A stretch of 64,000 nt of DNA, taken from Pseudomonas aeruginosa PAO1. Its GTDB lineage: Bacteria; Pseudomonadota; Gammaproteobacteria; Pseudomonadales; Pseudomonadaceae. Positions 19,175 to 30,939 of the stretch are shown here, piece by piece. Position numbers and translations under genes: made by a program. The number at the start of each line of letters is the position of its first letter. Position 1 is the first letter of the stretch. The notes under the pieces were generated by a model. It searched no databases and was not told where the DNA came from. It worked only from the letters and a program-made list of their open reading frames with translations. The DNA lies in the NCBI RefSeq assembly GCF_000006765.1, contig NC_002516.2; one strand, given 5' to 3'.

Positions 19175-19867
19175 TCAGCGCGGGGCGTAGCGGCCCCAGA
19201 GTTCCTCGAACTCGCGCCGATAGGCGCCGATCAGCACGGCGTCGTCGGTTACCAGCAGGTTCTCTTCGTTGTTGACGCTGGCGCTGCGGGTCCAGTTGAA
19301 ACTGCCGTTGAGCAGCCAGGCGCCATCCACCAGGGCGAACTTGTGGTGCATGTGGAAGGGACTGTCGTCGATTCGCAGCGGTACGCCGGCCTCGCGCAGC
19401 GCATGGATGTCGCTGCCTTCGTCGAACTGCTTGTCATCGTCGCTGATGATCCGCACCGGAACGCCGCGCCGATGGCAGGCCAGGATTTCCGCACTGAGCT
19501 GGTCGTCGGAGATGGTGAACACGCAGATGTCCAGGCTCTGCCTGGCCTGCCGGCACAGTTCGCGGATCTTCCGCCGACACTCCTCGCCGGGACTGAAATA
19601 GGCGCTGGCGCGGCTGCGCGGCGGCGCCGCGGTAACCTCCAGGGTGCGCACCACCTGCTCCAGCCACTTCAGGGCGGCTATCCGTTCGCCCTGCTCCTCC
19701 AGGAGGACCAGCTCACGCACCAGGTCGAAGGCACGGTTGCGCAGGAAACGCACCTGGTCGGGTGCCAGCTCGCTGCCCAGTTGGCGCAGTTCGTCCCGCT
19801 CCTCGTTGCTCAGCTTCAGATCGGCCAGGCTGTCGCGCAGCTGGCGGTCCAATCCGTCGAAGTCCAT
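19175..19867 (-). CDS. Single-HKD phospholipase D / Nuc-Zucchini-like protein with N-terminal helical domain (about PA3727)
   Basis: H174-x-K176-x4-D181 followed by GSFNWT; SD GAGGAG; starts 18 nt after the ATPase stop. Confidence 0.88.
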   Translation of the reverse strand: MDFDGLDRQLRDSLADLKLSNEERDELRQLGSELAPDQVRFLRNRAFDLVRELVLLEEQGERIAALKWLEQVVRTLEVTAAPPRSRASAYFSPGEECRRKIRELCRQARQSLDICVFTISDDQLSAEILACHRRGVPVRIISDDDKQFDEGSDIHALREAGVPLRIDDSPFHMHHKFALVDGAWLLNGSFNWTRSASVNNEENLLVTDDAVLIGAYRREFEELWGRYAPR

Positions 19868-19885: not shown

Positions 19886-22800
19886 TCAGGGTTGATCGTT
19901 CTCCAGCGGCCTCTGCTCGCCGCCCAGCAACCGGCCCAGTTCGTCGAGGCGGCTGGATATCTCGTTGATGCGGTTGTGCGTGCGCAGGTCGACGTCGATC
20001 TTGCGGTCCATCACCTTGATCAGCGGCAGGAAACTGTCCTGCAGGCAGGCGGCAAGGCTCTCCAGCACCTGCTGCACGCCCGGCTGCGCAGGCGCCGTCA
20101 CCTCGACGTTCAGCGCCGGCGCACCCTGGCCGAGCTGGCGCAATCCAGCCAACAACTCGTCCCAGGGCGCCGGTTGTACCGGCTGGGGTTCGCGAGCCAG
20201 GCCACGGACGCTTTCCACAAGGTCGTTGAGCTGCGCAACCAGCCGTCCGCCGACGTCGGCGTCGCTGCCGCCCATGGACTTGTTGCGCAGGAAGTCACGC
20301 TTGATCTGCGCCCAGCGCTCGGCCTGCTCGGGGCTCTGGTTGCCGCGCAGTTCGGCGAGCTTCAGCAGGTTCTCCTCGGCTCCGGTGGTCAGCAGTTGCG
20401 ACTCGCCCTGGTAGTGGTCGGCGATCAGTTGCAGCAGCTCGGCATCGTTCATCACCGCGGAGATCTTCTCCGCCATCTTGTTCATGTTGCGGTAGCTGCC
20501 CTGCAGCTTGAACGGCGGCTCGCTGCGGTACTGGTCGGCCTGGGCGGCGCTGGCGATGTACTGCTGGTTGACCTTGAGCACCACGTCGCGCACCTGCATG
20601 AGGCGTTGCAGGGTGCTGCTGATCTCGTTGATCTCGGCACCGCTGTAGCCGTGGGCCAGCTCGTTGCTGGAGAACGGCTTGCCCTCGGCCTTGGCGACGA
20701 AGCGATAGACGTCGGCCATGTCGCGGGTGGCCAGCGGCGCGAGAACCGGGTTGGAGGTCAGGGCGTTCTCGATGTAGCTGAGGGAGAACGCCTCCTGCAT
20801 GCCGCTGAGGGTGTCGCCGAGGTTGTAGATGTCGGCGCGGTTGGCGAGCATGTCGGGAATGCGGAAGACCTCGCCGGACTCGGTGTAGGGGTTGCCCGCC
20901 ATCACCACGCAGAACTTCCGCCCACGCATGTCGTAGGTCTTGGTCCGGCCCTTCCACACCCCTTCCACCCGGCGCGTGCCGTCGCAGAGGGAGATGAACT
21001 TCTGCAGGAACTCCGGATGGGTGTGCTGGATGTCGTCGACATAGAGCATCACGTTGTTGCCCATCTCCAGCGCCAGGTTGAGCTTCTCCAGTTCCTGCCG
21101 CGAAGTCGCGTCCGGCGCCTGCCCGGGGTCGAGCGAGCGCACCTCGTGGCCGAGGGCAGGACCGTTGATCTTCATGAAGATCAGCCCCAGGCGGTGCGCC
21201 ACGTACTCCATCAGGGTGGTCTTGCCGTAGCCTGGCGGGGAGATCAGCATCAGCAGGCCCATCAGGTCGGTGCGCTTGTTCTCGCCCACCGTCCCCATCT
21301 GCTTGGCCAGGTTGTCGCCGATGACACCCAGGTAGACGTCATTGATCAGCTTGTTGCGAACGAACGAGGACAGCGGTCGCGGCTTGAACTCGGCCAGGCG
21401 CAATGCCTCGCGCTCGTGTTCGACGATCTCCTGGCGCAGCGCCTGGTAGCGCCGCAGCCCCGGCAGGAATTGCTGGCGATGGCGACGCAGGCGGCCGAAG
21501 AAGTCGTCCACCGCCAGCGCCAGGCCGCGTTCGAAGATGCGCGGATGCTCGCCCATCAGGCCGTCGACCTGGAAGCGCAGGTCGACCTCGGTGATCCGTC
21601 GTGGCATCTCCTCGTCCAGCAACGAGAGCGCCACCGCCTCGTCCAGGTAGGCCGCCAGCGGCTGGAACTCGGCGTCGCCACATAGTCCGCGCAGCCAGTT
21701 GCCGGCCAATTCCCACTGGGCGGCGGGCCGCTCGCCGAGACGCTCCAGGGTCTGCCGGTAGTCGTCCCATAGACGCGCGCCTTGCAGGCGCAGCTTGAGT
21801 CCTTCCTGCAATTGCCGGGCATATTTGCTGAAGGTGAATTCGGGACGCTCGGCGGACAATTCCCAGACCAGGTACTCGGCCGCCTCGTCGATATGCTGCG
21901 GGTCCAGCGCGATGGGCTGTTCGGCGAGCAGCGCACGCATCGCCGCGGCCACTTCGCCGCGAAGGGCGAGCAGGCCGTCGTCACGACCGAACATCTGCTG
22001 GATGCTGCGGCTGCTGCGTGCCCGCTCGGGCCAGCCGGCGACTTCCCGCTCCTCGCGCCGGCGGCTCCAGAACAGGCTGGCGAAGGCCCGCGCCGAGGGT
22101 GCGTAGCGTAGCAGTCCGGCGCTCTCGCGCAACGGCAGCAGGCGAACCAGGATCGCCGCCGCATCGTGGTCGTGAATGCCTTTCTCGTAGCCCTCCTTGT
22201 AGCGCGGTGCGGCGAAATCGCGGATCGCCCGCGCCAGCTCGTCCGGCTGCGCCAGCAGCGCCTGCAAGCGCTCCAGGCTGAAGCCATCGCGGCCCGCGTC
22301 GGCGGCGGCGAGCACTTCGCCGGCGAGATATTCGGCGCGGTACAGCGTCTCCGATTCGGATTCCAGGTTCACCTGCCAGAACTCGCGCAACTCATCGAGC
22401 CGCGGGTCCTGCAGCGGTTCGAGGAAATCGGTGCCGGTCAGGTGCAGGTACAGCGCGTCGCCGCGCGGCATCAGGGTCAGGTCGAGTTCCTGGGTGTTGA
22501 CGCTGAAGCGGTGGCGCGGGCCCAGGCGGATGACGTCGCCGCCCTCCTCGAACAGCTCGCTCTTGTCGCGCAATGCGCGGACCGCCTGGTCGCGCGCGGC
22601 CTTCAGGCGCGCCTCGACGTCGTCGGCCTTGACGCTGTCCTTCAATTCGCGAAGACGTTCGGCCAGTTCGCGCAACTTGAGGATCAGCGGGTCGGCGGCG
22701 AAGAACGCGTTCAGTTCCTCCGCCTGGGTGAAGCGCGCGGTGCGTCGTTGCAGGCTGTCGAGAATTCGCCGGGCGGCGTCGAGCAGTCCCTGGGCCTTGC

Positions 22801-25126
22801 GCTGGCGCTCGTCGAGCAGGGTCTGCTTGTGCGCTTCGAAGGTTTCCAGCAGCTCCTCGCGCTTGGCCAGGATGTCGCCGAGGAACTGCTCATGGTCGCC
22901 GAACTGGCTTTCCAGTTCCTCCAGTTGCACCAGCAGGCGCGACAGTTGCTCGTCGCAGCGCTCGGGGTCCTGGGCCTGGGCCAGGGCGTTGGTGATGCCC
23001 TGGCCAAACAGTTTGAACTGGGCGCCGAACTGGGCCACGGTCTCGCTCGAACCGAGTCCCTTGCGCCGCTGCTCGGCGCGCGCCTTGGCCTGGTTCAGGC
23101 GGGCGTAGATCTCCGAGATCGACTCGATGATGCGGGTCCGCTGGGTCGCGTCGTCGATGCGCAGCGAAGCCATCAGCGAGGACAGCATGTCGAGGTCGCC
23201 GGCCATCGCCTCCAGGGCCGCCAGCGGCTCGCCGAGCTGGGCCACGGTCTCGGCTTTCTGCGCCTCGCCATCGAGGCTCTGCAGGCGCTCCAGCAAGGGC
23301 TGCAGGGCCTGTTCGCTGGCGAGGAAGGTCGCGGTGGCGGCGGCCACCCGCTCGTGGGCCGCGAGCAGTTCGGCCTCCATGGCGTCGAGTCGCGCCACGT
23401 CGATGTAGCGGTACTCGCGGATGGTCAGCAGCGACCCACGCTGGGCGGTGATGCCATTGAGCCCGTCGACGAACTGCTGCACCCGGTCCCAGCCGTCGGG
23501 CAGCAAGCCGGAGAGCAGCGCCTTGTGCCGCTCCTCCGCGTCGATCATCGCCTGGGCCGACTGGCGGCGGATACTTTCGACCTTCTCGTACTCGTCGAGC
23601 ACCAGCTCGGCGGTCGCCGCCACTTCGCGCAACAGCGGCGCCAAGCCGTCCAGTTGGTCGCTGCCGAGCCAGTGGTAGACGTCGAACAGGCGCTGGGTGT
23701 TCTGGCACAGCAGCGAGTAGCGCTGGATCGAAACCGCCGGGGTCTCGATCTCCCGGCACAAGTCGTAGAGGTCGGAGACGCCGCGCACCAGCTCGGCATT
23801 GCCGATCCGCCCGAGAAAACCGCTACGCGCCGGTTGGCGGGCCGCGTACTCCTCGGTGCAGAACGGCGTCTGCCAGACCTGCATCGGATGGATGCGGGTC
23901 GGTTCCTCGCCTTCGGCGGCGAAGATCACCATGCGCCCGTCCTCCAGGCGCGCGTAGCCGTGGCCGAACAGCGGATTCTGCAACTGGCGGTTGATCAGGT
24001 TGTAGGTGAGCAGCACGTTCCGCCCCTGCTCGGGATGGTAGAAAACGTACTGCACGTCCTCGCCGTTGGGCGAGCGTACCGAGCGCTTGAAGCGCATGCC
24101 TTCCATGGATTGCTCGAAGGTGCGGTACTCGCCGTTCTGCAGGTAGTAGCCGCCGGGGAAGATGATCCCGTGGTCCTCCGGCAACTGGATGCAGGCCAGG
24201 CCGATGGCGTCGATGCGCTCGACCTTGCCGGTCAGGCTGTTGAACACCAGGTAGCGCCACTGCTCCTCGCGATAGGGCAGGACCTTGAGCAGCAGCAGGC
24301 TGCCGAGGCGGGCGAACTCAACCTGCGCGTCGTCCAGCGACTGGGTCTTGTCCATCACCTCTTCGCGATAGATGCCCAGGCCGACCTCGGTGTTGTTCTC
24401 GACCTTGATGGTCAGGTCGCCGCCAATGGTCTCGACGAACAGGGTGTCGAGGATGTTCAGGTGCGGGAAGCGGCCCTCCACCACCATCTCGCGGGTAGCC
24501 CGCTGCCATTCGAAGTCGAACGGTGCCGGCAAGGCGATGTCGCGCTCGCCGCGGTTGTCGATGTAGCGGACTTCGCTGCCGTCGCTGGAGATCGACCAGC
24601 GGAACACGCGGATGTCGGTGATCCGCTCGCCGATCTGGAAGCTGGCCAGCAGCTTGCCGTCGCGGATCGCCAGTTGCAGCAGGCGGGTGTTCTTGTAGTA
24701 GGTGTAAAGCTCGTTGAAGTCGTTGACGAAGCCCGGCGCGGCGAGAAAGCTGTCCCCCAGTGGCACAGGCTCCGCCTCGTAGCCTTCGCTGCCCTCCACC
24801 AGGCGGTAGAGGGAGAACACGTCGGCCACGCCGGTTTCCTTGCGCAGGCCGATGAACACGTTGTAGCCGAACAGCAGGCAATCGCCGACCTGGACGATAT
24901 CGCGGGCGATGCAGTTGTTCTCGGTACGGATGCGGACCCGGCCGATCACATCCATCTGGCTGTCGCCGAACTCCTCCAGGCGACTGGCGTTGAGCCTTTC
25001 GGCGGTCTGCCGCAGGCGCTGGCCCTGCTCCAGCAGGCGCTTGTGCAGCACCTCGTAGGCGCCGCCCTCGGCAACGGCCTTGTCCAATACGTCCTGCGCG
25101 GGAGTTGCGGCTTGAGTGTCCGACAT
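19886..25126 (-). CDS. 1746-aa AAA+ ATPase with long N-terminal beta-rich and coiled-coil regions (about PA3728)
   Basis: Walker A SPPGYGKT (1296-1303), Walker B MLYVDD (D1364-D1365), sensor-like GNP, candidate Arg finger ANR (R1430). Confidence 0.9.
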   Translation of the reverse strand: MSDTQAATPAQDVLDKAVAEGGAYEVLHKRLLEQGQRLRQTAERLNASRLEEFGDSQMDVIGRVRIRTENNCIARDIVQVGDCLLFGYNVFIGLRKETGVADVFSLYRLVEGSEGYEAEPVPLGDSFLAAPGFVNDFNELYTYYKNTRLLQLAIRDGKLLASFQIGERITDIRVFRWSISSDGSEVRYIDNRGERDIALPAPFDFEWQRATREMVVEGRFPHLNILDTLFVETIGGDLTIKVENNTEVGLGIYREEVMDKTQSLDDAQVEFARLGSLLLLKVLPYREEQWRYLVFNSLTGKVERIDAIGLACIQLPEDHGIIFPGGYYLQNGEYRTFEQSMEGMRFKRSVRSPNGEDVQYVFYHPEQGRNVLLTYNLINRQLQNPLFGHGYARLEDGRMVIFAAEGEEPTRIHPMQVWQTPFCTEEYAARQPARSGFLGRIGNAELVRGVSDLYDLCREIETPAVSIQRYSLLCQNTQRLFDVYHWLGSDQLDGLAPLLREVAATAELVLDEYEKVESIRRQSAQAMIDAEERHKALLSGLLPDGWDRVQQFVDGLNGITAQRGSLLTIREYRYIDVARLDAMEAELLAAHERVAAATATFLASEQALQPLLERLQSLDGEAQKAETVAQLGEPLAALEAMAGDLDMLSSLMASLRIDDATQRTRIIESISEIYARLNQAKARAEQRRKGLGSSETVAQFGAQFKLFGQGITNALAQAQDPERCDEQLSRLLVQLEELESQFGDHEQFLGDILAKREELLETFEAHKQTLLDERQRKAQGLLDAARRILDSLQRRTARFTQAEELNAFFAADPLILKLRELAERLRELKDSVKADDVEARLKAARDQAVRALRDKSELFEEGGDVIRLGPRHRFSVNTQELDLTLMPRGDALYLHLTGTDFLEPLQDPRLDELREFWQVNLESESETLYRAEYLAGEVLAAADAGRDGFSLERLQALLAQPDELARAIRDFAAPRYKEGYEKGIHDHDAAAILVRLLPLRESAGLLRYAPSARAFASLFWSRRREEREVAGWPERARSSRSIQQMFGRDDGLLALRGEVAAAMRALLAEQPIALDPQHIDEAAEYLVWELSAERPEFTFSKYARQLQEGLKLRLQGARLWDDYRQTLERLGERPAAQWELAGNWLRGLCGDAEFQPLAAYLDEAVALSLLDEEMPRRITEVDLRFQVDGLMGEHPRIFERGLALAVDDFFGRLRRHRQQFLPGLRRYQALRQEIVEHEREALRLAEFKPRPLSSFVRNKLINDVYLGVIGDNLAKQMGTVGENKRTDLMGLLMLISPPGYGKTTLMEYVAHRLGLIFMKINGPALGHEVRSLDPGQAPDATSRQELEKLNLALEMGNNVMLYVDDIQHTHPEFLQKFISLCDGTRRVEGVWKGRTKTYDMRGRKFCVVMAGNPYTESGEVFRIPDMLANRADIYNLGDTLSGMQEAFSLSYIENALTSNPVLAPLATRDMADVYRFVAKAEGKPFSSNELAHGYSGAEINEISSTLQRLMQVRDVVLKVNQQYIASAAQADQYRSEPPFKLQGSYRNMNKMAEKISAVMNDAELLQLIADHYQGESQLLTTGAEENLLKLAELRGNQSPEQAERWAQIKRDFLRNKSMGGSDADVGGRLVAQLNDLVESVRGLAREPQPVQPAPWDELLAGLRQLGQGAPALNVEVTAPAQPGVQQVLESLAACLQDSFLPLIKVMDRKIDVDLRTHNRINEISSRLDELGRLLGGEQRPLENDQP

Positions 25127-25275: not shown

Positions 25276-27342
25276 TCAGACTTCCGCCGCCGGCTCGTTC
25301 TCGTGGCCGCTCTTGCGTTCCGGCATCACCGCAGCGGCTGCGCCACGGCCGTTGAGCAGGCGGGCGAGGACGTCCTGCACCACCGGGCTCTTGCCGACCA
25401 CACCTTCGATGGCCTTGCCCACCGACAGCGACTTGGCGAAGGAGTTGAAGAAGTCGCCCTCGCCGCCGACGATCTCGATGTTCGCCTTGCCCAGCGCGGT
25501 GGCGAGCACCTCGGCCTGGTCCTTGGCGATGTCCTTGTTCGCGGCGATGGCCGCCATGGCCTCCTCGAAGCTCTTCTCCAGCTGCATGCGGAACTCTTCG
25601 TGCTGGCGAGCGCTGTCGCTGAGGGCATCCAGGGCGCCGAACTTCTTGCCAAGCCCCTCGGCCTCGGCATTCAGGCGCTGCAGCAGTACTTCCGCTTCCG
25701 CGCTGCCCTGGTCCTTGGTGGCCTTGGCCTTGGCCGCGCCGAGCTGCTCCTCGCCGCGCGCCTGGGCGCCGAGCTTCTCGGCCAGCACCTTGGCTTCGGC
25801 CAGGCCGTCCTTCTCCTTGGCCGCGGCCTGCGCCTCGAGCACCCGGGCGTCGGCCAGGCCGCGCTCTTCGTCGCCCCTGGCTTCGGCGATCAGTTGTTCG
25901 GCACGTACCCGCGCCGCTGCCAAGCCATCCTTTTCCTTCGCCGCGGCGGTGACTTCCAGCACCCGCGCATCGGCCAGGCCCGGCGCTGCGCGCTCGGCCT
26001 CGATGCCCTCGGCCAGACGCTTCTTCGCCTCGGCCTGCTTCGACGCCGCCTCCAGCTCGGCCTGCGCCATGGTGTTGATTTCCACCGCCTTGTGCTTGGA
26101 GCGGGCCTCGTCGGCTTCCGCCTGCTTGACCTGGCGTACCAGCTCCTGCTCGGCTTCCGCCTGGGCCTGCAGCAGTATCACCTGCTTGACCCGCTCGGCC
26201 TCGGAAACCTCGCGCACCTCCTTGATCCGCTCCTCCTCTTGGGCCACGGTCTTTTCCACCGCGACGCGCTCGCGAATCACATTGGCAATGTTCTTGCGCT
26301 GCTCTTCCAGCGCCTTTTCCTTCTCGATCTTCTGCAGCTCCACCTCACGCTCGCGGGCGACGATCTCCAGGTCCTTGGCGCGGGTGACCTTCTCCACCTC
26401 GATGACCACCGCGCGCTGGCGGTTCTGCTGCGCCACCTCGACCTCGCGCTGGTGGTTCTCGGTGCGCACGTCGATTTCCTGCTGCGCCTGGATCCGCGCC
26501 TGCTCGGCCTTCAGCCGCTCCTCTTCCTTGACCCGCGCGGTTTCCGCTTCCTCGCGGGCACGGATGGTCTCGATCTCGCGCTTCTGCCGGGCCTCGGCGT
26601 CAGCCTGCTGGCGCTCCAGGGCCAGGGCCGCCTCGCGGGTCTCGACGTTCTTCTTCTTGATCGCCAGCTCTTCGTTGCGCTCCAGTTCGTTGGTGATGAC
26701 GTTCTGGGTGGCGGTCAGCTCGGTGATCTTGCGGATGCCCTCGGCATCAAGGATGTTGCTCGGGTCCAGCGAGTTCTTCGCGGTCTGCTCCAGGTAGTCG
26801 ATGGCGACGTCTTCCAGGACGTAGCCGTTCAGGTCGTTGCCGATCACCTCGATGATGCGGTCACGGAAGTCCTGGCGATTCTCGAACAGCTGGACGAAGT
26901 CGAACTGCTTGCCGACGGTCTTCAGCGCCTCGGAGAACTTGGCATTGAACAGCTCGTTCACCGCCGAACGGTCGGAAGCACGGTCGACGCCGATGGCCTT
27001 GGCCACCTTGAGCACGTCGTCCTGGGTCTCGTTGACCCGCAGGTAGAAGGCAACGGTGATGTCCGCGCGCATGTTGTCGCGGCAGATCAGGCCGTCCTTG
27101 CCGCGCCGGTCGACCTCCAGGGTGATCAGCGAGATGCGCATGAACTCCTTCAGGTGGATCACCGGATAGACCAGCGCACCGGTGAAATGCACCTTGGGCG
27201 TCGACGACATGTCGTTGACGATCAGCGCGGTGCCTTGCGGGACCTTGATGTAGAAGGCCTTGAACAGGGCCAGCAGGCCCACGACCAGCAGAACGACCAG
27301 GCCCACTCCCAGCAGGAGGGGCATCAGCGACGTCATATCCAT
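25276..27342 (-). CDS. Flotillin / SPFH (YqiK-like) protein (about PA3729)
   Basis: N-terminal TM helix, SPFH segment (LICRDNMRADITVAFY), very long Ala/Glu coiled coil, C-terminal IEIVGG. Confidence 0.88.
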   Translation of the reverse strand: MDMTSLMPLLLGVGLVVLLVVGLLALFKAFYIKVPQGTALIVNDMSSTPKVHFTGALVYPVIHLKEFMRISLITLEVDRRGKDGLICRDNMRADITVAFYLRVNETQDDVLKVAKAIGVDRASDRSAVNELFNAKFSEALKTVGKQFDFVQLFENRQDFRDRIIEVIGNDLNGYVLEDVAIDYLEQTAKNSLDPSNILDAEGIRKITELTATQNVITNELERNEELAIKKKNVETREAALALERQQADAEARQKREIETIRAREEAETARVKEEERLKAEQARIQAQQEIDVRTENHQREVEVAQQNRQRAVVIEVEKVTRAKDLEIVAREREVELQKIEKEKALEEQRKNIANVIRERVAVEKTVAQEEERIKEVREVSEAERVKQVILLQAQAEAEQELVRQVKQAEADEARSKHKAVEINTMAQAELEAASKQAEAKKRLAEGIEAERAAPGLADARVLEVTAAAKEKDGLAAARVRAEQLIAEARGDEERGLADARVLEAQAAAKEKDGLAEAKVLAEKLGAQARGEEQLGAAKAKATKDQGSAEAEVLLQRLNAEAEGLGKKFGALDALSDSARQHEEFRMQLEKSFEEAMAAIAANKDIAKDQAEVLATALGKANIEIVGGEGDFFNSFAKSLSVGKAIEGVVGKSPVVQDVLARLLNGRGAAAAVMPERKSGHENEPAAEV
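25741..25980 (-). repeat. Tandem 120-bp (40-codon) internal duplication in the flotillin
   Basis: GLADARVLEVTAAAKEKDGLAA.. versus GLADARVLEAQAAAKEKDGLAE..; DNA copies end at 25980 and 25860. Confidence 0.85.
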
Positions 27343-27377: not shown

Positions 27378-28019
27378 TCAGATACCGCGGAACTCTTCCT
27401 CGGTAACGACCCGATAGGCGTGCTCCGCCTCCAGGTACTCCAGCAGCACGACGCGATCGCCGCGCTTGAAGCCTTTGTTTTCTTCCGCACGAACTTTCAG
27501 GATCAGCCCGGCGCCGCCGTCTTCCAGCAACGCCTCGCCATGTTGCAGGGTGACCCGCCCGCTGCGCACCACCGCGACCTGGCCCAGCACCGACTTGCTG
27601 CTGGTGCTTTCCAGCTTGCGGAACAGCGGCCGCAACGGCCGGCACAGCGTGGCCGCCAGCGGCGCCGCCAGGAACAGCGCGCCCACCGCCACCACGGCGC
27701 CCAACGGGTAGCGCAGCCAGCCGAGCGGCAATGCGCTGAGCAGCCACAGCTGGACGAAGTAGCAGAGGAACCAGGCGAAGAAGGACAGCAGGGTCAGCAC
27801 CAGGGTGACCGGTACGCCGTTGAGTTTCAGCTTCGCCAGCAGCGCGGCGAGGCCTTCGGCCTGGCCGGCGCCATCGACGACCGACTCGGCGTCGAGATCG
27901 AGCACATCGATCTCGACCATGCCCAGGGCGACGATGCCCCAGTAGATGATCGCTAGGATCAGAAGAAAGCTGAACAGCACGGTCGGGAACGACAGCGCCG
28001 TCTGCAGGAAACCTTCCAT
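27378..28019 (-). CDS. YqiJ / NfeD-like membrane partner of flotillin (about PA3730)
   Basis: Several TM helices, GVPVTLVLTLL motif, C-terminal OB-like beta segment (GQVAVVRSG..GEALL..KRGDRVVLL). Confidence 0.82.
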   Translation of the reverse strand: MEGFLQTALSFPTVLFSFLLILAIIYWGIVALGMVEIDVLDLDAESVVDGAGQAEGLAALLAKLKLNGVPVTLVLTLLSFFAWFLCYFVQLWLLSALPLGWLRYPLGAVVAVGALFLAAPLAATLCRPLRPLFRKLESTSSKSVLGQVAVVRSGRVTLQHGEALLEDGGAGLILKVRAEENKGFKRGDRVVLLEYLEAEHAYRVVTEEEFRGI

Positions 28020-28074: not shown

Positions 28075-28770
28075 TCAGGCCTTGCCCTTTTCCTTCAGGC
28101 GCGCCAGCACGCCATCCACGCTGTTGCCCGAGGCCTTGATCCCAGCCGCGCGCAGCTTGGCGTCCAGCGCATCGTCCGGCGCCGCCGCGCTGGCCAGTTC
28201 GGCCGCGGCATCCATGGTCGCCGCGCGTTCGGCCTGGCGCTGCTTGATCCGCTCCAGGGAGTCCACCGCGGTCTGCAGCTTGCTCTTCGAGTTGCCGTAG
28301 CGCTGGGCAACGGCCATCTGCGCCTTCTGCACGCTCTCGGTGGCCTTGACCGTATCCACCTGTTGCTTGAGCTGGCGGATGTTGCCCTCGGCCTGGCTCA
28401 CCGACTTGCGCAACTGGGCTACGCTGGCGGCGAATTCCGCGACCTGGGCACGCTCGCCCTCGAGCTGGTTCTCCAGGGTCGCGATCTTCTCCGCGACCTC
28501 CCGGGCCAGCTCCTCGTTGCCGGCCTCCAGTGCCTTGATCGCGTATTGCTCGTACTCGGCGACCTGGGCCGCGCCCTTCTCGACGCGCTCCTGGGCCAGG
28601 CGGTGGCGGGCCATGATCGAGGCCAGCGCTTCCCGCGACTTGCGCAGTTCGACGTCGGCGTCGCGGATCTCCTGGTCGAGGATGCGCAGCGCCTGGCTGT
28701 CGACGATCGCCTCGCCAACCTCGTTGGCTCCGCCGCGCAGGGCGCTCAGCAGCTTGCTCCATACCGTCAT
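28075..28770 (-). CDS. PspA/IM30 (ESCRT-III superfamily) protein, YjfJ-like (about PA3731)
   Basis: MTVWSKLLSALRGGANEVGEAIVD..LDQEIRD..; coiled coil; ATESVQKAQ; SD GGGAGG. Confidence 0.9.
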   Translation of the reverse strand: MTVWSKLLSALRGGANEVGEAIVDSQALRILDQEIRDADVELRKSREALASIMARHRLAQERVEKGAAQVAEYEQYAIKALEAGNEELAREVAEKIATLENQLEGERAQVAEFAASVAQLRKSVSQAEGNIRQLKQQVDTVKATESVQKAQMAVAQRYGNSKSKLQTAVDSLERIKQRQAERAATMDAAAELASAAAPDDALDAKLRAAGIKASGNSVDGVLARLKEKGKA

Positions 28771-28784
28771 GATGGTGTCCTCCC

Positions 28785-29405
28785 TCAGGCCCGGGCTTTC
28801 AGGTAGCCGGCGTAGACTTCCGTGGCGCGGATCACGTTGCCGGCCAGGGTTTCGATTTCGTGCAGCACGCTGGCCAGCGACGAAGTCGTGCTCAACGCGC
28901 CGAACATGCTGTAGCAGCGCTCCTCGCCCGGCAGGTTGAGCAGGCCGATGCTCGACAGCGGGAACAGTTGCCGGCTGAGCAGGACCTCTTCGTTGAAGGC
29001 GGTCGCGTCGGTAACGTCGCTTTCCGGCCAGAGCAGCGCCTCGACGATGATCTGCTCGCCCTGGGGCGCGACGAACACCGGCAGGTCGCCGTATTCGCGC
29101 ATGATCACGTAGAGACTCGCTTCCGCCCCCTCGATCAGCTCGATCTGGGCCTCGCCGCTGCTGAACAGCTCGGTGCCGCTCAGGGCCTCGGCCAGCGAGC
29201 GAGCGTTCCATACCCGGGCTTCCGTCATGTCTTCCTCCTTCTCCAAATGAGCCGCTCCGGCAGCCGGGCGACGCAGCATCCGCTCGATGCCGGCGAGCGC
29301 CGCGGCGTTCTCCGGCAAGATCCAGACTTCCTTCTTCACCAGGCCCTGCTCGCGCAGGCGCTGGCGAAAGACACGCTGATAATGGGCCGATGATTTCCGT
29401 TGCAT
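28785..29405 (-). CDS. YjfI/DUF2170 protein with N-terminal basic extension (alternative internal start at 29228; about PA3732)
   Basis: GDLPVFV..EQIIVEALLW..PLSSIGL..YSMFGAL core; upstream in-frame MQRKSSAHYQRVFRQRLREQGLVKKEVWILPE. Confidence 0.82.
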   Translation of the reverse strand: MQRKSSAHYQRVFRQRLREQGLVKKEVWILPENAAALAGIERMLRRPAAGAAHLEKEEDMTEARVWNARSLAEALSGTELFSSGEAQIELIEGAEASLYVIMREYGDLPVFVAPQGEQIIVEALLWPESDVTDATAFNEEVLLSRQLFPLSSIGLLNLPGEERCYSMFGALSTTSSLASVLHEIETLAGNVIRATEVYAGYLKARA

Positions 29406-29411
29406 GGACTC

Positions 29412-29440
29412 ACACTACGAGATCACATGTAAGATTTCAA
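29412..29440 (-). promoter_or_regulatory. Predicted sigma70 promoter TTGAAA-17-TAGTGT; predicted +1 at the A of ATG 29405
   Basis: -35 at 29440-29435, -10 at 29417-29412, 6 nt (GAGTCC) to the ATG. Confidence 0.65.
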
Positions 29441-29454
29441 CAGATCACATGTAA
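29420..29454. repeat. Two exact 13-bp direct repeats AGATCACATGTAA, 22-bp period
   Basis: Copies at 29420-29432 and 29442-29454, each containing the palindrome ACATGT; they flank the -35. Confidence 0.9.
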
Positions 29455-29739
29455 TAAAAACCAACGCACGCGCATATCTACGCCGGGCCGGCCGGAGCAT
29501 GGAAAAGAAACACGGGGAGGAAAGAGAGAAAGAAATGGCACGAGGGGCCTCCCTGGCTCGGTGTCTGGCGCGCTACATCCTGTATCGACTCCCGCATTAA
29601 ACCCTCTATGCAAAAGGAATTGAAGGACCGCCGGGCATATCGGGAAAAAACGGGAAACGTCTCACCCTACCGCGGCACCCGCCCGCACCGCCGGCAAATG
29701 CTCTAGGCTATGCGCACACTGCAGCCTGACGGACACCGC

Positions 29740-30939
29740 ATGGAACATTCGCCCAAACCGCTGGCCGGCCTGAAGGTGGTCGAGCTCGGCACCCTGATCG
29801 CCGGCCCTTTCGCCTCGCGGATCTGCGCCGAGTTCGGCGCCGAAGTGATCAAGATCGAGTCGCCCGACGGCGGCGATCCACTGCGCAAGTGGCGCAAGCT
29901 CTACGAAGGCACCTCGCTGTGGTGGTTCGTTCAGGCACGCAACAAGAAATCCCTGACCCTCAATCTCAAGCACGCCGAAGGCCAGGCGATCCTGAAACGC
30001 CTGCTCGGCGATGCCGACATCCTGATCGAGAACTTCCGCCCCGGCGTACTGGAAAAGCTCGGCCTGGGCTGGGATGTCCTCCACGCGCTGAACCCGCGCC
30101 TGGTGATGGTGCGCCTGTCGGGCTTCGGCCAGACCGGCCCCTACAAGGACCAGCCGGGCTTCGGCGCGGTCGGCGAGTCGATGGGCGGACTGCGCTACAT
30201 TACCGGCTTCGAGGACCGCCCGCCGGTTCGCACCGGGATTTCCATCGGCGACTCGATCGCCGCCCTGTGGGGCGTGATCGGCGCGCTGATGGCGCTGCGA
30301 CACCGCGAGGTCAACGGCGGCGAGGGACAGATGGTCGACGTCGCCCTCTACGAGGCGATCTTCGCCATGATGGAAAGCATGGTTCCGGAATTCGACGTGT
30401 TCGGTTTCATCCGCGAGCGCACCGGCAACATCATGCCGGGCATCACCCCCTCCTCCATCCACACCAGCGCCGATGGCCGCCACGTACAGATCGGCGCCAA
30501 CGGCGACGCGATCTTCCGCCGCTTCATGCAGGCCATCGGCCGCGACGACCTGGCCAGCGACCCGCGACTGGCCAGCAACGACGGGCGCGATGCGCGCCGC
30601 GACGAACTCTATGGGGTTATCGACCGCTGGGTCGCCTCGCAGCCCCTGGAGGAAGTGCTGGCGGTGCTGGCGCGAGCCGAAGTCCCGGCCAGCCGCATCT
30701 ACTCCGCCGAAGACATGTTCCGCGATCCGCAATTCCTTGCCCGCGAGATGTTCCTCTCGGCACGCTTGCCGGACGGCAAGCCATTCCGCATGCCTGGCAT
30801 CGTACCCAAGCTGTCCGCCACGCCAGGCTCGGCGGATTGGGTAGGCCCGGAACTGGGCGAGCATACCGATGCCCTGCTCGCCGAGCTGGGCTACGACAGC
30901 GAGGGCATCGCCGCCCTGCGCCGGGAAGGCGCCATCTGA
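29740..30939 (+). CDS. CaiB/BaiF class III CoA-transferase (alternative start 29710; about PA3733)
   Basis: PLAGLKVVELG..IAGPFA, GAEVIKIE, RNKKSLTLNLK, ADILIENFRPG. Confidence 0.93.
   Translation: MEHSPKPLAGLKVVELGTLIAGPFASRICAEFGAEVIKIESPDGGDPLRKWRKLYEGTSLWWFVQARNKKSLTLNLKHAEGQAILKRLLGDADILIENFRPGVLEKLGLGWDVLHALNPRLVMVRLSGFGQTGPYKDQPGFGAVGESMGGLRYITGFEDRPPVRTGISIGDSIAALWGVIGALMALRHREVNGGEGQMVDVALYEAIFAMMESMVPEFDVFGFIRERTGNIMPGITPSSIHTSADGRHVQIGANGDAIFRRFMQAIGRDDLASDPRLASNDGRDARRDELYGVIDRWVASQPLEEVLAVLARAEVPASRIYSAEDMFRDPQFLAREMFLSARLPDGKPFRMPGIVPKLSATPGSADWVGPELGEHTDALLAELGYDSEGIAALRREGAI

Follow-up and report, generated by a model that had tools for sequence, protein, structure and literature searches.

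Type II toxin-antitoxin antitoxins repress their own operon and bind their partner through their C-terminal part, and lambda cI expressed from PRM and TetR of Tn1721 are autoregulating repressors whose mRNA begins at the AUG and whose operators overlap their own promoter. CheA-L/S, ClpB 93/79 and IF2 alpha/beta are pairs in which two in-frame starts on a single mRNA are used and the shorter product lacks an N-terminal functional domain, and the psp operon of Escherichia coli is sigma-54 dependent. We analysed 64,000 nucleotides of the genome of Pseudomonas aeruginosa PAO1 (NC_002516.2; this whole stretch is called the window), in which bacA (PA3732), an open reading frame (ORF) of 206 amino acids (aa) at 28785..29405 on the minus strand, heads the Psp-like operon bacABCDEF. 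Two palindromic boxes lie at the promoter of bacA, and the published transcription start site (TSS) of the corresponding transcript falls on the A of its upstream ATG. The explanation that we favour, with a probability of roughly 0.7, is that long BacA, translated from a leaderless mRNA, would act through the two boxes as a self-repressor, and that a short isoform would be made in addition.

In the 206-aa bacA product, a variable linker joins a small, basic N-terminal domain (N-domain) to a YjfI/CesT-like domain of chaperone fold. The NCBIfam model NF050185, 'biofilm formation regulator BacA' (an equivalog with a cut-off of 300 bits), matched it with 339.3 bits, residues 1-206 corresponding to profile positions 1-206, whereas Pfam PF09938 (DUF2170) matched residues 66-202 only (E = 7.2e-50, above the gathering score). 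The features of the start region, all read on the minus strand, are as follows.

29442..29454, minus strand: distal operator box, 13-bp repeat TTACATGTGATCT
29445-29454, minus strand: near-palindromic 10-bp core TTACATGTGA of the distal box, -49..-40 from the TSS
29435..29440, minus strand: -35 hexamer TTGAAA, between both boxes, one G separating it from the distal repeat
29420..29432, minus strand: proximal operator box, second exact copy of TTACATGTGATCT, TC separating it from the -35
29423-29432, minus strand: core of the proximal box, -27..-18 from the TSS, within the 17-nt -35/-10 spacer
29412..29417, minus strand: -10 hexamer TAGTGT, CG separating it from the proximal repeat; GAGTCC follows, then ATG
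29403..29405, minus strand: ATG start of long BacA, 6 nt past the -10, its A (29405) being the published TSS
29265..29402, minus strand: basic N-domain, codons 2-47, MazE-like/DUF3018-related, the proposed operator-binding and dimerisation module
29229..29264, minus strand: variable linker, residues 48-59, containing the internal Shine-Dalgarno (SD) sequence
29234-29240, minus strand: internal SD, AAGGAGG, 5 nt before the ATG at 29228
29226..29228, minus strand: internal in-frame ATG, Met60, start of the short gene model and proposed start of a short isoform
28788..29225, minus strand: YjfI/DUF2170 domain (CesT-like chaperone fold), residues 61-206, with the stop codon at 28785-28787

Transcript start and boxes of the bacA promoter

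In the differential RNA sequencing (dRNA-seq) of strain PA14 by Wurtzel et al. 2012 (PMC3460626, Table S3), transcription unit (TU) 841 consists of PA14_16140 and PA14_16150 and has its TSS at 1374599, the start of its first ORF at 1374776 and a 5' untranslated region (UTR) of 177 nt, which was taken as a long UTR. PA14_16140 is annotated from the internal ATG, the distance from the start of PA3733 to that ATG is 482 nt in PA14 and in the window alike, and TU 841 ends where the pspA-like ORF does, at 28075. Since the local geometry is the same and 29228 + 177 = 29405, the PA14 TSS is the A of the upstream ATG, which is where an earlier note on this DNA, made from its letters alone, had predicted the +1. 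Taking as leaderless an mRNA whose TSS lies at, or a few nt from, the A of the start codon, we are highly confident that the bacA mRNA is leaderless and codes for the long protein. PA3732 was absent from the supplement of a PAO1 RNA-processing paper.

We compared 83 orthologous loci from Pseudomonadaceae and Xanthomonadales (80 with one genome per species, and three from Xanthomonadales). The median anti-SD duplex energy upstream of the long-form ATG was -2.4 kcal/mol, i.e. there is no SD, in agreement with the earlier observation that this ATG lacks a good one, and over its first 60 nt the mRNA folds worse than 197 of 200 shuffles (z = +1.83). An in-frame stop lies at most 21 nt upstream of the ATG in 81 of the 83 loci and is often the TAG of the -10, as in the window, where the TAG of TAGTGT doubles as the stop; an alternative start is absent in 68 of them. 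With purifying selection from residue 5 on and no other usable start or SD, translation would begin at the ATG at 29405. We also observed that Lys4 (29394-29396) is AAA in 80/82 loci, compared with 32% AAA for the gene as a whole, and that the Ser codons following it are A/T-rich in many orthologues; such an A-rich, weakly structured 5' end is as expected for a start codon at the 5' end of an mRNA.

The promoter TTGAAA-17 nt-TAGTGT-GAGTCC-ATG is arranged as previously read, its hexamers being conserved as TTGnnn and TAGnCT at fixed distances, and the two exact 13-bp repeats described in the spacer and just upstream of the -35, with a period of 22 bp, proved to be there beyond chance. With up to 2 mismatches allowed, TTACATGTGATCT has exactly 2 sites in the 64 kb (0.19 expected), a number reached in 0/100 shuffles, and the core TYACATGTRA occurs in the window at the same two sites only (0.01 expected). 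Palindromic repeats thus overlap the -35/-10 region of bacA's own promoter, which is the layout of a self-repressor.

Upstream of every usable orthologue we found the pattern T[TC]ACATGT[GA]A, a few nt, TTGnnn, a few nt and T[TC]ACATGT[GA]A, followed by 4 nt, TAG[T/G]CT, 5-6 nt and ATG, the distance from the -10 to the ATG being conserved. The upstream DNA is otherwise unalignable among the 83 loci, only the two boxes, the TTG, the TAGnCT and the ATG being kept, and the TTG of the -35 forms a high-information column in a box-anchored profile. The boxes are 22 bp apart in 66 loci and 23 bp apart in 14, and the proximal ACATGT lies 25-26 nt from the ATG in 81. Conservation of the repeats together with the extension, which had been suggested as a check, therefore holds across the 83 loci. 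The 304-bp divergent intergenic region 29406-29709, between bacA and the CoA-transferase-like PA3733 (29710-30939, plus strand), is not conserved in other species except in two parts, the block of the bacA promoter and, immediately upstream of its distal box, a stretch rich in A/T. A Luteimonas orthologue (L083, 2900-3000) has three boxes with a 22-bp period and two TTGA-type, -35-like hexamers between them.

Co-occurrence of the box with the N-terminal domain

Box and domain were also found together far outside the orthologous loci. Five very distant fusions of the N-domain to DUF2170 have palindromes with half-sites TTAC/GTAA (TTAC-NN-GTAA) directly upstream; by fusion, these are TTACATGTAA twice; TAACATGTAA, TTACATGTAA and TATCATGTAA; TGACATGTCA; TTACCGGTAA; and TTACGAGTAA and TTACTTGTAA. 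E. coli yjfI, which served as a negative control, has neither the N-domain nor the box. Stand-alone relatives of the N-domain, of 44-75 aa, are the last genes of small-gene operons on phage-like contigs, and in all five such loci that could be evaluated the sole TNACATGTNA within 3-5 kb occupies the -35/-10 spacer in the promoter of the relative's operon (about 0.3 expected by chance in 21.7 kb, loci pooled), which is also the placement of the proximal bacA box. The five promoters read as follows.

CTTGCAg-TAACATGTAA-ctgaTG-TATAAT
CTTGAAg-TGACATGTCA-cgggTG-TATGAT
TTGCAT-TTACATGTAA-tgatcTG-TATAAT
TTGACTg-TGACATGTCA-catatgG-TATGCT
TTGAAT-TACATGTAA-tggtgTGa-GATGAT

The box sites of the stand-alone relatives are at L084 2210-2245, L087 1600-1632, L097 ~1165-1200, L100 ~790-825, L102 431 and 719, and L104 1566-1597. 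These arrangements suggest that the stand-alone relatives may be a family of small phage repressors with a common operator, and that box and domain occur together is what speaks most strongly for the proposed binding of the box by the domain. A scan of viral contigs with one relative (P0212) gave no relatives, and a scan with a narrower alignment gave one locus. Our searches found no literature relevant to the box sequences or to UrfF, nor did any structure or operator for this small domain family turn up. Some of the distant fusions (L095 1-1377, L096 3085-3633) have yjfK/L/M (DUF2491, DUF350, DUF1190) and a glutathionylspermidine-synthase-like gene as neighbours in place of the flotillin/AAA set, so that the N-domain fusion is found in both classes of YjfI-PspA neighbourhood.

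The N-domain evolves as a protein. Its sequence follows the pattern SSAHYQRvfRQRLReqGLVKKEVWILPE...L..ER.LR.P, and in the alignment of orthologues no part of BacA is better conserved than residues 5-47. Its codon positions 1/2/3 differ at rates of 0.133/0.065/0.383, and synonymous differences (0.346) far exceed non-synonymous ones (0.123), which excludes the reading of the extension as a '177-nt UTR'; the DUF2170 domain is looser (0.267 versus 0.231). A site-specific synonymous constraint was seen at Glu32 (29310-29312), which is GAG in 83/83 loci, compared with 58% GAG for Glu in the gene as a whole.

A domain-profile search of 1.8 billion representatives returned 126 proteins, among them the stand-alone proteins and many fusions of the N-domain to DUF2170, whose linkers vary widely in length. 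The likeness to DUF3018/MazE-like proteins that the earlier note had pointed out was borne out at profile level. In our alignment A3, 39 of whose 44 sequences are stand-alone relatives, 19 sequences match Pfam PF11455 (MazE-like, formerly DUF3018), one of them (P0243) above the gathering score (24.9 bits versus 22), and a typical PF11455 protein (P0311) has the stretch R-x-x-R-x-R-L-R-E-Q-G-L-x-x-x-x-I-W-V-P in common. Aligned by hhalign with the PF11455-labelled proteins, which had been collected with a BacA-derived profile, the BacA N-domain (alignment A2) gave a probability of 97.6% and E = 2.7e-12 over 43 columns. By its own sequence the BacA N-domain stays below the 22-bit gathering score of PF11455, and the relation, which runs through intermediate sequences, is real at the superfamily level. 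A homologue search with P0243 returned nothing besides P0243. The stand-alone relatives also gave weak matches to a PHROG 'transcriptional regulator' and to the NCBIfam 'plasmid repression protein F'.

The ribbon-helix-helix label attached to this likeness found no support. That fold, the one of the Arc/MetJ/CopG repressors, needs strand-helix-helix with an N-terminal ribbon strand, whereas AlphaFold2 (AF2) with the family alignment predicted a helix (6-19), an extended segment (20-30) and a second helix (31-45) with a predicted local distance difference test (pLDDT) score of 89.9, and no ribbon-helix-helix family appeared in the Pfam and NCBIfam scans. Foldseek of the model against the viral library BFVD gave nothing with E below 3.5. 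Sequence searches of the PDB with the N-domain and the family profile stayed at chance level (DnaA, 0.7; a Lon-like protease, 0.021; the C-terminal part of KorA, 0.65), and the resemblance to the KorA dimerisation domain, at E = 0.65, is a lead only. In the model the extended segment 20-30 probably pairs in a dimer, and the DNA might be read either by the ribbon so formed or by the first helix, which is basic and invariant. Except for the fold label, our results support the interpretation given in the earlier note, and we think it likely that the N-domain is a box-binding autorepressor.

Internal start, proposed mechanism and alternatives

The strong SD (AAGGAGG) noted before the internal ATG at 29228 was confirmed, and 82/83 loci, through 63 distinct linker sequences, have GGAG, GAGG or AGGA as a core, followed after 4-16 nt by an in-frame ATG. 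The protein sequence of the linker is nearly free to change (residues 48-62: non-synonymous differences 0.42, synonymous 0.12). The internal ATG precedes the first Trp of DUF2170 by four or six codons. Its median SD duplex energy is -12.6 kcal/mol, as compared with -8.1 for the start of bacB and -3.2 for background ATGs, and only 0.07% of the other ATGs in the orthologous loci match or exceed it; an internal SD and Met are present in 4/5 distant fusions as well. Because W3 of E. coli YjfI aligns to W66 of BacA, the N-terminus of YjfI sits just after Met60, and the proximity of the internal SD and ATG to it implies that an old yjfI start was retained after fusion. Such retention argues for use of these signals, and we consider it rather probable that a functional short isoform exists. 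In published work, short BacA has been produced only recombinantly.

We propose that a sigma-70-type promoter, TTGAAA-17-TAGTGT, starts transcription on the A of the ATG (29405), and that long BacA would be translated from the leaderless mRNA and would probably be scarce for that reason. The N-domain would dimerise, with one dimer on each 10-bp palindrome T(T/C)ACATGT(G/A)A, and the two dimers, 22 bp or two helical turns apart, would lie on the same face of the DNA. One dimer would cover the -35/-10 spacer and the other would abut the -35, so that their cooperative occupancy would exclude RNA polymerase and the operon would repress itself. The SD-led internal ATG would most likely give a short, more abundant chaperone-like isoform, such as that crystallised. 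The chaperone-like domain, which dimerises by itself according to published work on the BacA structure, could link both operator-bound dimers and bind BacB, and, more speculatively, the short isoform or BacB could modulate repression in response to a signal, as in toxin-antitoxin or PspA-PspF systems. A fuller version, which we offer tentatively and at somewhat less than even odds, joins these steps: one mRNA with two modes of initiation would yield a scarce long repressor and an abundant short form, the long:short ratio and BacB would set the output, which would amount to a translation-mode-dependent stress switch for a Psp-like system, and the N-domain would represent a new helix-strand-helix, TNACATGTNA-binding family related to DUF3018 and acting in phages as a spacer repressor. 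In that version, and as tentatively, the short form could not bind DNA but would have the same dimerising chaperone domain and the BacB-binding surface.

Several points weigh against the self-repressor explanation. The -10 is weak: TAGTGT retains the T at position 1, the A at position 2 and the final T at position 6, and because it equals TATAAT at only 3/6 positions, a generic sigma-70 and terminator scan of 28700-29800 missed the promoter and called nothing. For the TSS there is a single data set, obtained in a single strain. Direct Pfam scans gave no match for residues 1-59 (E <= 10) or 1-50 (E <= 0.1), AF2 of the full-length monomer gave the N-domain a pLDDT of only 30-49, and Foldseek of the N-domain model against the PDB found no match, the fold thus being without a solved analogue. 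For the internal start, the codon test was suggestive but unspecific, E57 being GAG in 71/72 but E32 in all 83, and acidic/glycine-rich linkers tend to yield GGAG unaided. Finally, a 6- to 13-fold rise of BacB-F in a 'ΔbacA' strain was published (Wallart et al. 2024, PMC10948618), which agrees with self-repression, but that strain carries a MAR2xT7 insertion and was grown in gentamicin, complementation being unmentioned in the text, and transposon read-out could therefore account for the derepression.

The alternatives that concern the transcript and the promoter all have something in their favour. If the short gene model were right and the 177 nt upstream of 29228 were a long 5' UTR conserved as RNA, the annotation of PA14_16140, the TSS table and the crystallised short protein would all fit; this has next to no chance, given the three-base periodicity of change and the excess of synonymous differences in the segment, a frame open in all loci, stand-alone protein homologues of the extension and an NCBIfam equivalog that spans residues 1-206, and as far as sequence analysis allows we regard it as refuted. 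A sigma-54 promoter driving the operon would have its precedent in E. coli psp. That promoter, with BacA exerting negative control by protein-protein contacts alone, was proposed from sequence inspection (Wallart et al. 2024, PMC10948618); we rejected it as very improbable, as neither GG at -24 nor GC at -12 is found when counting from the mapped TSS, a score of 6/12 was the highest for any sigma-54-like match in 29151-29720, that match being inside the long-form coding sequence, and the conserved hexamers are of sigma-70 type. Long BacA might instead be an activator or a MerR-like spacer-binding switch, for the box is in the spacer, where MerR-type activators bind, and a weak -10 could need activation. 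We hold this to be improbable: the spacer has 17 nt rather than the 19-20 nt typical of MerR targets, the stand-alone relatives have the box in promoters with a near-consensus extended -10 that need no activator, and the downstream proteins rise, not fall, in the bacA::Tn mutant.

Two further alternatives accept the promoter and question what the boxes or the internal signals do. The boxes may serve another, unlinked regulator, the N-domain acting otherwise, e.g. by protein or RNA binding, and the lack of a solved DNA-bound relative of the N-domain agrees with this. We think it unlikely, however, in view of the co-occurrence of box and domain across unalignable promoters and distant taxa and in five phage-like operons otherwise unlike the bac operon, and of their joint absence from E. 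coli yjfI. It is less doubtful, although still not what we expect, that only the long protein is made and that the internal SD and ATG mark a translational pause site, are a fossil of the fusion or arise as a by-product of the acidic/glycine linker. With the start of YjfI near the aligned position, these signals could be relics, GGAG arises from Glu and Gly codons, and the single-column codon bias is not confined to the SD; on the other hand, the true bacB start has a weaker SD than the internal one, which persists in nearly all loci through linkers that otherwise change freely, and in most of the distant fusions.

The bac operon and described systems

The other genes of the operon, whose existence was demonstrated by reverse-transcription PCR (Wallart et al. 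2024, PMC10948618), are the following ORFs.

28075-28770, minus strand: bacB, PspA/IM30-like
27378-28019, minus strand: bacC
25276-27342, minus strand: bacD, flotillin/band-7-like
19886-25126, minus strand: bacE
19175-19867, minus strand: bacF

The operon is Psp-like in that it encodes a PspA-like, a flotillin-like and a 1746-aa protein, among others, and a PspA_IM30 gene follows the bacA orthologues too, with no MazF/PemK-type toxin gene adjacent. A second TSS, at about 27471 (minus strand) in the 3' end of bacC (PA14 1376533, with a 129-nt UTR, for PA14_16180/bacD; Wurtzel et al. 2012, Table S3), implies a promoter internal to the operon, one that control at the bacA promoter would not reach. 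Truncated BacA variants of 99 aa (P0255, whose cluster has 27 members, and P0292), frameshifted after about residue 93, occur in P. aeruginosa assemblies; they would retain the N-domain and lose most of the chaperone-like domain, and may either exist as natural alleles or stem from errors of assembly.

The crystal structure PDB 8q8o covers residues 61-206 only and is identical to them in sequence, and AF2 was confident for the DUF2170 part, with the order a-b-b-b-a-b-b-a. The suspicion that the annotation starts at the internal Met was right for the PA14 gene model, 8q8o and the 2024 BacA paper, all of which use the short form, and wrong for current RefSeq and NCBIfam; since these already use the 206-aa form and the name BacA, the long gene model is not new. 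A 2026 paper predicts a BacA-BacB contact, and a phage-shock-protein (PSP) survey notes only the CesT-like fold for YjfI; the N-domain, the boxes and the leaderless start are unmentioned in that survey and in the bacA/BacB literature that we examined.

Experimental work treats BacA as a 'possible regulator' of its Psp-like operon, which is associated with biofilm and virulence, and the structure, the sigma-54 proposal and the regulatory model all rest on a gene model missing 59 N-terminal residues. The missing N-domain would explain why the crystal showed no DNA-binding feature, the published derepression may be a transposon artefact, and the corrected model offers a simple mechanism, in which an autorepressor made from a leaderless mRNA would act on two defined operators. 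The family of small domains that occurs in chromosomal Psp-like operons, phage operons and DUF3018 antitoxins would also gain a probable function and its cognate DNA motif.

Compared with described systems, BacA is closest in its N-domain to the DUF3018/PF11455 antitoxins paired with MazF/PemK, whose genes precede mazF/pemK toxin genes on plasmids and with which it has the N-terminal motif R-x-x-R-x-R-L-R-x-x-G-L-x-x-x-x-W-[VI]-x-P in common. However, only the first ~36 of the 65 profile positions are common to both, bacA has no toxin gene, and a CesT-like chaperone domain, in a Psp-like operon, takes the place of the partner-binding C-terminus of the antitoxin. In comparison with lambda cI and TetR, the predicted DNA-binding fold of BacA is different, and bacA, unlike those genes, is a leaderless cistron at the head of a six-gene chromosomal stress operon and has a second, SD-led in-frame start. 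In the PspA-PspF and ExsC-ExsD-ExsA circuits, a protein of the PspA family or of type III secretion system chaperone fold feeds back on the transcription of its own system, which BacA resembles in its chaperone-fold C-terminal domain and the predicted contact with BacB; in those circuits, however, the chaperone or PspA acts solely by protein contacts on a separate activator, whereas in BacA the chaperone fold is fused to a putative DNA-binding domain, and the bacA promoter is sigma-70-like rather than of sigma-54 type. Genes with dual starts differ from bacA in that its upstream start is leaderless and its downstream start is SD-led, from which different modes of initiation would follow. E. 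coli YjfI (DUF2170, in yjfIJKLMC), with 34% identity over the chaperone-like domain and likewise followed by a PspA-family gene, has 133 aa, an ordinary upstream region and no N-domain or boxes. Judged from sequence, the comparison supports the view that bacA may combine features of known kinds, being a gene with two starts whose product, an autorepressor made from a leaderless mRNA, has an antitoxin-like module for DNA binding.

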